Shown here piece by piece: positions 8,580 to 14,423 of a stretch of 32,441 nucleotides of DNA. The stretch lies in the NCBI RefSeq assembly GCF_000315625.1, contig NW_005434645.1, positions 110,602 to 143,042 on the forward strand, written 5' to 3'. A program made the translations under genes and the position numbers. Every line of letters begins with the position of its first letter. Within the stretch, counting starts at the first letter, position 1. The stretch comes from Guillardia theta CCMP2712. Lineage: Eukaryota; Protista; Cryptophyta. Below the pieces are notes generated by a model. The model had not been told where the DNA came from. It did not search any database and saw only the letters and a program-made list of their open reading frames with translations.

Positions 8580-11500
8580 ATGATAATGGACAAGAGCGAG
8601 ATCCACGACACTCTCGAAGAATTAATCGGAGATGAAAATAGCCATGACCTTGATGTTACAGTCCTGAGCGAACGCCATGAGAACGGTAATGGTTATCATG
8701 AGGATGGTAATGGTTGTCATGAGAACAGAAATGGTTATCATGTCGATCCTGGTCTCGCCGATGATCAACCTGGCCCTTCGTTCCCAGCCATTGACGAAGA
8801 TGATGAAGAGCAGCCGCACAGAAGCGTTGGGATACCTCCACAGTTGTGTTTTTGCACTGCCCAGCCTTATGGTTTGGCATACAAGTTACGCCAAGTCTGC
8901 ATCCAGCTGGACAGCAGCTTTGCATGGAGTTTTTTCGTTTTTTCCATGTCCATGCTAAATTGTTTGGGAGTTACGATCATGGCAGAACTGTACACGGGAG
9001 ATTACAGGAACAGTGCAGTATTCCACACCCTGTACATTTTTGATGATCTCTGTGTTGGAATACAAGGGATTGAAGTTTTTGTGGGAATATCTGCCAAAGG
9101 TTTCAAGACCTGGATCAAGGATGTGTACAACAAGCTGGAGCTCTCTCTACTGTCCACAGCTCTTCTCGGTTTCTGCCTCACTTCTCTTGGGTGGAGATCA
9201 TTGCTTGTCGAATGTTTCTTAGACTGACTAGCCTCACAGATGGAAGGTCTTTGTATTGCGATCGTTCAGGCTGCTGCGGCTCTTCAAGCTCCTTTCCCGC
9301 TTCCAGGCTCTCTCGTACGTCAAGCACATCGTGACGACCTTGGAAGTCGCACTGGTCCAGATGTTCACCGTCTGCTCCATTCTGTTCTTCTTCATGTTGA
9401 CATACAGGTAGGACGCTCCTCGTCCTCTATGTTGAACTTTTTGTTTATTCTCTACCTTTGACAGCTTGCTCGGCATGTCTGTCTATCAGAGTTCCTTCAA
9501 GCGAAGGTGTGTCTCAATGGAGTACCTTAGCCAACCTTGTCAGTCCTACAGCTCACCATGGTCGTCTTCTTGTTCGCTGCCATTCCAATGGGAAAGAGAT
9601 CCGCTGAGATCGAGCTGGAACGTGTCAGTACCAGGAGGATATCCCTACTTCGAGCTGTGCGATATCATTTCGTTCGACAGCGAGGACTTTCCAAAAGATT
9701 ACCTAGGTCGACGACACACGTGCCAGGTGCAAATGATCCTTTTCTCTCTCTTTCTTGCCGCGTGACAAGATGCCGTTAAGCTCGCAAGGCACAGAAGAGG
9801 CGAGCAAGTAAAGCAGATGTGCACGATCGTGGGATACCCGCCGGTGAGTTCAGCGGGCAGAGAGTCATGCTTGTGGGTTAGAAGCAGCGCTCACGCGAGC
9901 GTTCTTGCAGAATCAGTTCGGATACGCGCACTTTGACAACGTCGGATCCGCACTCCTGGCGGTTCTCCAATGGGTGATCGCAGACTCAGCCTATGACATC
10001 ATGTGGTTCAGCTACGAGAGCGAGTACTATGTCAGGTTCTTGACGTTCCTGCTGTATCCGGCCATCACCATCACCTGCTCTTGGATGCTTCTCGGGATGT
10101 TCATCGCGATCGTGACGGGAACCTTCCAGCGAGTCAGAGAAGAAGAGAAGACAAGAACGTCCCAAGTTGCCCCAGAGTAAGAAAACCCCTGCATGTGTGA
10201 CCTTCTACTGACAGCGAGACTCCGCAGACAGATACTTGAGAAGGTGGTGGACGGGCCTCAGTCCGACAAGAATTTTCTTCAGGAAAGCCTCCCCGCAACT
10301 ACTGAGACAGCCCAGATGACGATATCCGTTGAGTCGCCCAAGGCGCAGATCCCTATCTCTGAACAGAGGGTGGACATCAAGCAAGAAGCCTGCTGTTCAA
10401 CTCCGGGGTGGAATGTCTTCAAAGATCGGGCTCTGCTCTTGCAGCAGAGCTCTTACTACCAGCTCTTCTTGTCCTCTATCATCGCTCTACAGACCATCTT
10501 CCTTGCGATGGACGACGAGACCTCTCTCTCGAAGATGCCGTTGTCGTTTGTGGTGATCTATTCGACATGCCAGGCAGTCTATGTCTTTGATGTCTTCTTC
10601 CAAGCTTTCGTGATGAACCGAATGATGGGGGAGAGTGAAGTAGCCATCATCATCGTCCTCGTTTCCGAGGCTCTCCTTTCACTCCTTGGGATCATCGGCC
10701 TGGGGGCGAACTGGAATTTTCTGATCCGCTTGCAATGCATTCGCATCTTCCGCCTGTACAGATACGTCCCTGTGCTACAGGGGCTCATCAACTCAGCAGT
10801 GAAGGGAGTTCCTGCAGTGATCAACCTCTGCATCTTCTGCTTCATCTGGATCCTCTGCTTCACTGTGACAGGAAGGTTTCTATTCCGCGACTCCATGAAC
10901 GATATCACCCGATCAAACTTCTCCTCCTTCGAGATCGGCTTCCTTACAGTCTTCCAGATCTTCACGGGGGACTCTTGGTCCGGCGTGCTGTACAGCGCAA
11001 TGGCGTCCAAGGATGGTTTCGCAGGGAAGTTTGCAGCAGCGATATTCTTCATTGTCCTGCTGCTCATGAGCAACATAGTTCTCGTGAACCTCTTTGTCTC
11101 CGTCGTCATCGAGAACTTCAACTTTGCCGAGACCATCTCGAGCATCGAGGACGGGAAGAACCTTCAGTGGATGAGGAAGCAGTTTGCCAACTATCAGTCG
11201 AACCTCCAGGAGTCGCTCAAGGCCATGCAGCCTCGGGTGTCTGCGAGCAACCTGACTCGAACGGACTCGCACGCCTCCTTCCTGCTGACAAACATCTTCG
11301 CCAAGGCGAACTTGGCAGACAAGGGGGACAAGGAGTTGAAGGAGAAGGCGAAGGAGAAGAAGTCTTCAGGGGGGAGCGAGGCATCCGCGGCAATGCTCAA
11401 GACGGGCTTGTCCACTCGCATTCTTATCAATATGGCGTCCCTGGCGAACCCAAAGGTGCACCTCAAAGACCAGAAGTACGCAGATCGCGTCCTCTTCCTC

Positions 11501-14423
11501 CTCTCCTCGGATTGGACCGTGAGGAAATTTTCATCAGGTTCGGCAACTCCTTCATCTTTGACTGGATCGTGTACCTCACCATCGTTGTGAGCTGCGTGCT
11601 GCTCTGCCTGACGCCGCCCTACGACGACATCCCACACGAGACAGTTCTGATCTCGCCGAAGACGATGAGCATGCTGAACCTGGCGACAACCATTGTTTTC
11701 ACGCTTGAGTTTGTCGTGCGGATCATGGTGTCCGGGCTGCTGCTCGAGAGCAATGCGTATCTGAGATCGGGCTGGAACCTCGTTGACCTGCTCGTGCTCC
11801 TCCTCTCGTGGATGGACGACCTTGCAAGCATGTCGTCGATGAACTCGGCGAAGTCTCTGAGGATCATGCGTATCCTCCGCCCCCTCCGCCTTGTGAAAAA
11901 GAACAGAGGGATGAGAACGATCACAAATGCTCTCCTCTCTGCTCTTATCCCGACCTTCTACGTCCTCATCTTCCTCTGCACCATCCTGTTCAGCTTCGGA
12001 GTGATCGGGAGAGGGCTGTTCGGCAACCGATTCTACTCCTGCAACGCCTACGACGTGAGCTACCCGGCAGGGAAGGCAGAGTGTAGCGGGATGATACTGA
12101 ACAAGGACCAGTTGTTTCTCCAACCTCGGGCCTGGGTCAACTACCAGCACAACTTCGACAGCATCGCGTCCGCCATGATCTCTCTGTTCAAGGTCACAAC
12201 CCTCAAGTACACCGGAACCCTCCAGGCCAGTATGGACGTCACGACCCGTGACCAGAGCCCGAGCACGAACAACTCGACCTACTACGGGCTATACTACGAA
12301 GTCTACGTCCTCGTCGGCTCCTTCTTCATCTGGAACCTCTTCGTTGGCTTCGTCGTCGACGGCTTTTACGCCAACAGAGGGTCTGACAAGGTGGACAGCA
12401 TCTTCCGCCGCTGCCATCGGCTCGTGAGCGAGAGGAAGACCAAGGTCATCGCTGCCCTCCTTCCCCGAGAGCCCTGGAGGGTCATGATCTACGACCTGCT
12501 GCGGTCCAAGTGGTACAAGACTTTCTCCATCTCCTGCATCGCCATCAACGTCGTCTTCATGTCAACGCAGCATGCCGACTCGTCTCCTTCCTTCAACCGC
12601 ATGATGGCCACACAGAACCTCTTCTTCTACGTCCAACTCCTCGTCGAGGTCCTCCTCTCCTTCCTCGGCTTCGGCTTCCGCCACTTCTTCCACGACATCT
12701 TCCGCGTCTTCGACCTCATCGTCACCCTCGGCCTCAGCATCGGCTACGCGTCGGGGAGCAGAGAATTCATGGAGTTCGGCAAGTCGTTCCGCCTCCTCCG
12801 CATCATCCAGGTCATGTGCATCCTCGGACCCGTCGATCAGATCCTGCAGACTCTGTTGAAGTCGCTCCCTCAGCTCGCCAGCATCTCCGCCCTCATCTTC
12901 CTCATCCTAGTCATGTTCGCCTCCCTCGGCGTCCAGCTCTTCGGCATCACCCGAGCTGGTCGCCGACTGGGCCCGACCGCAAACTTCGAGAGCTTCCCCC
13001 AGGCTCTGATGACCTGCCTGCAGATCCTGCGAGGGGACGAGTGGCAGGAGCTGCTGGAGGACTCCAAGGTCCAGGCTCCCTCCTGCACCCCGATCTTCGA
13101 CTCGGCCCACGTCTACGGCTACGAGGGGAAGGACCTGTCCTTCGGGGACTGCGGAGCTTCCGCATGGCTGTCGGACTTGTTCTACATCGGCTTCAAGCTG
13201 GTATGCGAGGCTTCGCTCCTCAACCTCATCATCGGAATGATCCTCCAGAACTTCTCTTACATTACTGAGGACGCGTCACATGTGGAGGATGCGGAGTGGT
13301 CTACGGGACCTTCCGTGCGGCAGGTGGGACCATTTCGACCACCCGCTCTCTCCTCTCCTCTCCTCTCCTCTCCTCTCCTCTCCTCTCCTCTCCTCTCCTC
13401 TCCTCTCCTCTCCTCTCCTCTCCTCTCCTCTCCTCTCCTCTCCTCTCCTCTCCTCTCCTCTCCTCTCCTCTCCTCTCCTCTCCTCTCCTCTCCTCTCCTC
13501 TCCTCTCCTCGCTTGTTTTTCGGCATGAGCGTGATCCTGCGGCAGGTGGAGGAGCTTCACGAGATTTTCCTCAGGTTCAGCAACGCTGACGAGATGTTCG
13601 ACCCCGAGGACACGCTTGTGCTCATGAAGGCCTTTCCTCGTCCTCTCGGATTCCGGACGTCGCAGGAGGGAGATGCAAAGTTTGGGAGGCTGGACAAAGC
13701 AGCAGCGAGGCTGGTCCGGGCAGAGTTCAACCTGCTGCTGCGAGAGAGGAGGGGGGACAGGGAGTTCAGAGACAAGAGTGCCATCCCTCTCAGCCGCATC
13801 GGCCTCTTCGTCTCCAAGGTCCGGACTTGGTTCGATGGCAGGGATGATTGCACTGAAGGTAGCTCCTCCTCTCCTTCCCTCTCCTCCTCCACTTCCTGCC
13901 TGCCTGCCTTCCTCATTCTCATCCTCTTTCCCGTTCTGTCGCTTTTTCTCCTGCTCTACTCCATTGCCTTTCGTATGATCCTGCTCACCCCGTTTGCACC
14001 TCTCCCGCATCCTCTCTTCTCCTTTGCAGTCTTTCCCTCTCCCCCCTCCTCCTCTACCGTCTTTCCCTCTCCCCCCTCCTGCTCTACCGTCTTTCCCTCT
14101 CCCCCCTCCTCCTCTACCGTCTTTCCCTCTCCCCCCTCCTCCTCTACCGTCTTCCCCTCTCCCCCCTCGTCCTCTACCGTATATCCTCCTTTCTTGACAC
14201 CGCTGCTTCTCCTTACCGCCTGTCCTCAGTCACGTTCGAGGATGTGGTCACCGTGATGCTCTTTTGGCGCCTCCCCTCGCTGATCCCCGACAATCTCAAA
14301 CGCGTTCACGCGCGGCGCGTGCAGGAGATTCAGTTCCTCCATCACGCGATCGCTATCAAAGATTTTCTCAGGCGGCAGGTAGCGAGGAGGAAGGAGATTC
14401 TCCGCAGGAGCCCCTCGCTGTAG
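8580..14423 (+). CDS. Four-domain voltage-gated-type cation channel alpha subunit, NALCN/Cch1-like; one-base frame break near 11528-11531
   Basis: Exons approximately 8580-9190, 9240-9407, 9465-9726, 9781-9843, 9911-10176, 10228-13323 (frame change near 11530), 13546-13858, 14230-14423. Four S4 helices: LRSFRLLRLFK, QCIRIFRLYR, KSLRIMRILRPLRLVK, KSFRLLRIIQ. Four pore loops: FDNVGSALLAVLQWVIAD, FQIFTGDSW, PRAWVNYQHNFDSIASAMISLFKVTTLK, ANFESFPQALMTCLQILRGDEW...VQAPSCTP...DCG. S6 segments VNLFVSVVIENF, NLFVGFVVDGF, NLIIGMILQNFSY. C-terminal VTFEDVV and an IQ-like AIAIKDFLRR. Confidence 0.9.
8677..8742 (+). repeat. 21-bp coding tandem repeat x3 (HENGNGY/HEDGNGC/HENRNGY) in the channel N-terminus
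   Basis: catgagaacggtaatggttat catgaggatggtaatggttgt catgagaacagaaatggttat. Confidence 0.9.
13346..13510 (+). repeat. (TCCTC)n pentanucleotide microsatellite, about 33 units, inside channel intron 13324-13545
   Basis: Perfect repeat seen directly. It accounts for the (LLSSP)n and (ERRGE)n translations in the ORF track. Confidence 0.95.
14027..14180 (+). repeat. 30-bp pyrimidine-rich minisatellite, about 5 copies, inside channel intron 13859-14229
   Basis: Unit gtctttccctctcccccctcctcctctacc repeated with single substitutions. Confidence 0.9.

Follow-up and report, generated by a model that had tools for sequence, protein, structure and literature searches.

What ions would pass a four-domain channel whose selectivity ring holds three aspartates and a lysine, and is the gene that encodes it, interrupted as assembled by a frameshift, still a working one? 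Both questions are raised by a locus of the cryptophyte alga Guillardia theta CCMP2712, in a window of 32,441 nt (the whole stretch of DNA that was analysed, contig C29:110602-143042), where the original prediction placed a channel resembling NALCN and Cch1, possibly of leak type. The best explanation, to which as a whole a probability of about 0.75 can be attached, is that a single-copy nuclear gene in the window encodes the pore-forming subunit of a cation channel with four domains (4 x 6TM), from a cryptist D/D/K/D family predicted to be voltage-gated and to admit Na+.

The gene is read through eight exons, none of which contains an in-frame stop, and is single-copy in the G. theta assembly (Table 1). 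All seven introns have GT-AG boundaries and lengths of 49-371 nt; the least certain splice site is the start of exon 6, at intron 5. Searches and folds were done exon by exon, on unjoined pieces. Pfam PF00520 (Ion_trans) matches DI (in three pieces), DII, DIII and DIV, giving four tandem repeats, and the top matches among solved structures, by HMMER and by Foldseek, are four-domain channels. In the two C-terminal exon pieces the Pfam search returned nothing at E <= 0.01, so that neither a GPHH nor a Ca_chan_IQ domain was detected; exon 8 contains an IQ-like stretch (14325-14375), judged by eye only. Two of the introns hold tandem repeats: a perfect (CTCTC)n microsatellite of 32.6 copies in intron 6 (window 13348-13510), which appears in translation as an 'SSPLL' run, and a 30-nt minisatellite of 5.1 copies in intron 7 (window 14029-14180).

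The splicing is confirmed by an orthologous mRNA, both in tblastn of its protein (P0001, 85% identical to the window gene) and in blastn of the nucleotide sequence against the window. P0001 is encoded on a 5247-nt intronless contig (L017, JGI sample 3300017027), identified as an mRNA because it has untranslated sequence at both ends and no introns. P0001 had been called from an internal Met; the open frame runs about 115 codons further upstream (L017:1-628), and the upstream Met of this frame corresponds to the start codon of the gene at window position 8580. The window gene and its orthologue are 0.17 apart, as far as Guillardia and Hanusia are in other paralogue groups, so the probable source of the orthologue is Hanusia or a relative just as distant.

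Table 1. Features of the channel gene, in window coordinates.
Feature	Position	Strand	Description	Basis
Whole gene	8580..14423	+	four-domain cation channel alpha subunit, ATG to TAG, ~1657 aa, eight exons	orthologue P0001 tblastn, mRNA L017 blastn, splice sites
Exon 1	8580..9190	+	N-terminus and DI S1-S3	orthologue mapping, splice sites, Pfam Ion_trans
Exon 2	9240..9407	+	DI S4-S5	splice sites, Pfam, translation
DI S4	9256..9300	+	R, R, R, K in register, one R out of register	translation
Exon 3	9465..9726	+	DI extracellular turret	orthologue mapping, splice sites
Exon 4	9781..9843	+	remainder of DI turret	orthologue mapping, splice sites
Exon 5	9911..10176	+	DI pore loop and S6	HMMER, splice sites, Pfam
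DI ring residue	9983..9985	+	Asp, GAC, VIA-D-SAY	translation, HMMER, alignment
Exon 6	10228..13323	+	I-II linker, DII, II-III linker, DIII, DIV	HMMER, orthologue mapping, Pfam
DII S4	10724..10762	+	three Arg in register, one out of register	translation
DII ring residue	10970..10972	+	Asp, GAC, FTG-D-SW; n+1 is Ser, no 'beacon' Asp	translation, HMMER
Frameshift	11528..11529	+	one base; TT in AAATTTTC in place of a full orthologue codon, Ala757	comparison with orthologue
DIII S4	11851..11901	+	K, R, R, R, R, K, K	translation
DIII ring residue	12205..12207	+	Lys, AAG, TTL-K-YT; one residue fewer than in Cav and Nav directly after it	translation, HMMER, AlphaFold2
DIV S4	12781..12810	+	K, R, R, followed by Gln; of the four sensors the weakest	translation
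DIV ring residue	13036..13038	+	Asp, GAC, LRG-D-EW; n+1 is Glu (GDEW)	translation, HMMER, AlphaFold2
Exon 7	13546..13858	+	proximal C-terminus, no Pfam match	orthologue mapping, splice sites
Exon 8	14230..14423	+	C-terminus, IQ-like stretch, then stop codon	orthologue mapping, splice sites

The ring reads D/D/K/D at the four codons originally proposed, and each residue aligns with a Cav ring glutamate. In the HMMER alignments, the DI Asp lies opposite the E of ITLEGW in Cav3.1, the DII Asp opposite the E of LTQEDW, the DIII Lys opposite the E of STFEGW in Cav1.1, with a one-residue gap after the Lys, and the DIV Asp opposite the E of ATGEAW in Cav1.2. The original prediction had allowed that this gap might bring other residues to the ring; it falls after the Lys, whose position is set by the conserved P1 helix that precedes it (LF.V.T), and so cannot move it. 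The DIII-DIV exon piece was modelled with AlphaFold2 from a 27-row alignment (pLDDT 79.4, pTM 0.72). In the model both ring residues lie at the P1-P2 apex: K226 in a four-residue loop (224-227) between helices 212-223 and 228-235, and D503 in the corresponding DIV loop (502-504) between helices 489-501 and 505-511.

The same ring, the deletion after the lysine and the GDSW (DII) and GDEW (DIV) contexts are found by MAFFT alignment in the orthologue, in GUITHDRAFT_132377 and GUITHDRAFT_166006, in two Hanusia phi proteins, in one MMETSP protein and in several environmental proteins. When paralogous loci are read directly, at least nine genes in the G. theta genome carry the DIII lysine. D/D/K/D is found at C29 (the window gene), C38, C104, C4 (GUITHDRAFT_132377), C89 (GUITHDRAFT_115870) and C3; C128 (GUITHDRAFT_166006) reads D/?/K/D, with DII outside the alignment, C87 reads ?/D/K/D, with DI unread, and C191 reads D/D/K/A. 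All four ring positions are carried by at least seven G. theta genes, as well as by the Hanusia phi and environmental relatives. The C191 paralogue (L008 + L018, about 83618-92934) is divergent and matches GUITHDRAFT_148154 in the FASTA file of a recent preprint (10.1101/2025.04.04.647097); its ring differs by a single conservative change from that of animal Nav1, DEKA, and it is absent from the 2018 survey of these channels.

Trees were built only from paralogue stretches open in one frame, in the DIII-DIV region. Thirteen crown sequences form one clade (support 100/98; 100/99 in a second tree), within which the window gene is monophyletic with GUITHDRAFT_132377 and GUITHDRAFT_166006; the window gene pairs with its orthologue (100/100), and the C38 group is the sister of this pair (98/94). 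Every member of the 13-sequence clade that aligns at four positions has D/D/K/D, and partial members agree where aligned. As judged from these alignments, the ring is not a product of chance: the same residues and the same post-Lys deletion occur in the orthologue and in every aligned member of the clade. Outside the crown clade the nearest relatives are two environmental proteins, with rings of ?/D/K/E (P0016) and D/D/N/E (P0112); the lysine is thus older than that clade, yet not universal among the sequences closest to it.

A ring of this type is already on record. The original prediction had regarded DDKD as new to characterised channels; D/D/K/D(G) was published in 2018 for Guillardia (WSC VIII) and oomycete (WSC VI) channels and likened to the EEKE of NALCN (PMC5824947), and DDKD is mentioned by Fux et al. 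2018, citing Verret 2010 (PMC6259924). The WSC VIII/VI channels share with the window gene the ring and the acidic DIV n+1 residue, and the Guillardia set comes from the same species; the window gene nests in the clade of GUITHDRAFT_132377 (Guillt7 in the survey's naming, PMC5824947), and GUITHDRAFT_115870 (Guillt6) has the same ring.

The comparison with NALCN itself holds up. The ring can be described as an aspartate counterpart of EEKE: like NALCN (7SX3, 6XIW), the window gene sets a DIII Lys among three acidic residues, has an acidic residue at DIV n+1 (GDEW) and lacks an Asp at DII n+1, and the two possibly belong to the same broad clade. In contrast to NALCN, its ring has Asp instead of Glu, DIV n+1 is Glu instead of Asp, and a residue is missing after the Lys. 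The Nav1 ring, DEKA, is absent, with only the DIII Lys in common: the window gene resembles Nav1 in the Lys at this position and in its four charged S4 segments and differs in having Asp rather than Ala in DIV and Asp rather than Glu in DII. Nav channels fall in a separate clade in published trees. Because a whole cryptist family has the DIII Lys in common, this residue is, as originally proposed, of an origin independent of the lysines of animal Nav and NALCN. Cav1 and Cav2, defined by an EEEE/EDEE ring with Asp at DII n+1, give the highest solved-structure score (335 bits) and have an alignable III-IV linker and DIV turret; unlike them, the window gene has D/D/K/D with Ser at DII n+1, and lacks the EEEE ring, the DII beacon Asp, GPHH and Ca_chan_IQ.

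By the rules derived from Nav, Cav and NALCN, including that of the DII n+1 'beacon' Asp (PMC10120453), the DIII lysine and the missing beacon would reduce the affinity for Ca2+ and allow Na+ (monovalent cations) to pass, and the acidic DIV n+1 residue may in addition cause Ca2+ block, as has been suggested for NALCN. Sodium permeability was proposed for the D/D/K/D(G) filter by Pozdnyakov et al. 2018 (PMC5824947), and the same suggestion in the original prediction stays a reasonable one. These rules may not carry over to a ring built of Asp instead of Glu with a deletion beside the Lys. The channel could, despite its lysine, be mainly Ca2+-permeable or a non-selective cation channel in which the ring gives no preference for Na+: three acidic ring residues and the DIV n+1 Glu are still there, Ca2+-permeable and non-selective channels with aspartate rings are known (PMC10120453), and the deletion could point the Lys side chain away from the pore. 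We nevertheless consider this outcome rather unlikely, given that a ring lysine in DII or DIII accompanies Na+ permeability in every characterised four-domain channel (PMC5824947, PMC10120453) and that the DII beacon Asp is absent.

Passage of Na+ through this pore would probably not be a leak. The S4 segments of NALCN and Cch are poor in Arg and Lys (PMC5824947). By contrast, those of the window gene have regularly spaced positive charges, numbering 4-5 in DI, 3-4 in DII, 5-6 in DIII and 3 in DIV. Since all four thus keep at least three, the channel is predicted to be voltage-gated, and the original 'leak-type' label finds no support; the DIV S4, with three charges only, is a point against the best explanation.

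A channel that functions in this way presupposes an intact gene, and the assembled copy is one base short. The frameshift lies between DII and DIII, within an A3T4 run in a conserved stretch just before DIII S1, where the window reads AGG AAA TT TTC ATC against six codons of the orthologue (R K A F I R). In the assembled sequence, translation would end about 20 codons past this site, after DII. In the orthologous mRNA the frame is open across it, and that mRNA encodes the same D/D/K/D ring. A very short intron that would bypass the frameshift was considered and rejected: the sole GT...AG pair, 11519-11537, spans 19 nt and has the wrong phase, against 49-371 nt for the real introns.

Taken at face value, the frameshift would make the CCMP2712 copy a recently inactivated pseudogene, truncated after DII. 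The lesion does stand in the assembly, the locus is single-copy, hence there is no intact second copy, and no database protein matches it: two word-index searches, covering proteins of 645-2053 aa and of 329-1046 aa (329-2053 aa together), returned nothing above 85% identity, and thus no G. theta protein, transcript or gene model for the locus. Against inactivation, no other lesion occurs in the coding sequence of about 4.9 kb, this one sits in the A3T4 run, all splice sites are intact, and selection has acted alike on both sides of it. The dN/dS ratio against the orthologue is about 0.1, with values of 0.06-0.21 in every region either side of the frameshift and about 0.11 downstream, and the window gene is under purifying selection. 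Only a very recent inactivation would leave such a pattern, and a pseudogene is accordingly unlikely; most probably the frameshift is an error of the draft assembly. It may, and probably does, explain why the protein database holds no entry for the locus.

Where the family belongs relative to NALCN, Cch1 and Nav rests on the tree file of the preprint 10.1101/2025.04.04.647097. In its Newick, GUITHDRAFT_166006, 132377, 115870, 107403 and 148154 form a D/D/K/D cryptophyte clade together with sequences from Geminigera, Baffinella and Cryptomonas. Goniomonas channels are the sister group of this clade, and channels of Palpitomonas and oomycetes branch next outside (10.1101/2025.04.04.647097); among the latter is Saprolegnia XP_008603782, also part of the 2018 data set (PMC5824947). 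This whole assemblage and a streptophyte/Rhodelphis group are together sister (76/78/0.999) to NALCN/Cch1 plus a proximal cryptist clade. That proximal lineage, adjoining NALCN/Cch1, comprises GUITHDRAFT_164211, 132907, 148910 and 101752, with the D/D/K/D clade one node further out (10.1101/2025.04.04.647097). Our own DIII-DIV tree, in which branches are long, is consistent with this within its sampling: the lysine family groups with GUITHDRAFT_164211 (90/91), apart from Cav1, Cav3 and green-algal channels.

The description 'NALCN/Cch1-like' consequently survives in part. The family sits in a broad clade with NALCN/Cch1, as the preprint tree has it, but four other G. theta genes are closer, so that within this species the window family is not the lineage closest to NALCN/Cch1. 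On the trees, the D/D/K/D family is a relative of NALCN/Cch1 in the broad sense and not an orthologue; this position and the charge-rich S4 segments also set it apart from NALCN. That the window gene is instead the cryptophyte NALCN/Cch1 orthologue, a voltage-insensitive leak channel working with Mid1/FAM155 and UNC79/80, is very improbable: its DIII Lys and acidic DIV n+1 residue do recall the NALCN pore class, the broad clade and the 90/91 grouping with a NALCN-proximal channel agree with it, and a G. theta Mid1 homologue, GUITHDRAFT_99496, is listed (10.1101/2025.04.04.647097), yet the lineage adjoining NALCN/Cch1 is formed by those four other genes, the node joining the D/D/K/D family to it has only 76/78 support, the S4 segments are rich in charge, and no UNC79/80 homologue has been reported from Cryptista.

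Similarity scores give a different impression, which proved misleading. By phmmer against solved structures, the window gene scores 335 bits with Cav1, 279-314 with Cav2 and Cav3, about 225 with Nav and 165 with NALCN, a ranking that would suggest 'Cav-like, not NALCN-like'. This reading was rejected because a control that adjoins NALCN/Cch1 in the preprint, GUITHDRAFT_164211, gives nearly the same order (Cav1.2 325, NALCN 141), so that such an order says nothing about phylogeny. A Foldseek comparison of the DIII-DIV model with the PDB does not discriminate either, with Cav, Nav and NALCN all at TM of about 0.7. In GUITHDRAFT_164211 (L012, C55:31460-35647) the DIII ring residue is Arg (ILRGL), and those of DII and DIV are Asp; among solved structures this protein matches Cav1.2 best, and NALCN is the lowest among four-domain channels. 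The caution is a general one, in that solved-structure similarity scores cannot place such channels relative to NALCN.

Returning to the gene as a predicted voltage-gated member of this cryptophyte family, it appears to be a paralogue missing from both the 2018 survey (PMC5824947) and the protein database. None of the ten G. theta sequences of that survey (Guillt1-10) matches it in the S4 segments, a mismatch that the frameshift may also explain. To a family already described, the window thus adds an apparently unannotated member, for which there are now a curated map of the exons and the cDNA of an orthologue, and a count of family size in one genome. Tentatively, and with the odds somewhat against so wide a claim, the DIII lysine and its adjacent deletion may mark an old voltage-gated, Na+-permeable four-domain family that expanded in cryptophytes and is possibly shared with Goniomonas, Palpitomonas and oomycetes.

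To our knowledge, sodium-selective four-domain channels have been shown only in animals. The algal lysine-bearing family is a candidate for a second, independent origin of sodium selectivity, an idea in print since 2018. If this is true, Na+-based fast electrical signalling through four-domain channels would have arisen outside animals as well, and its origin there would lie within the wider clade that also produced NALCN/Cch1.
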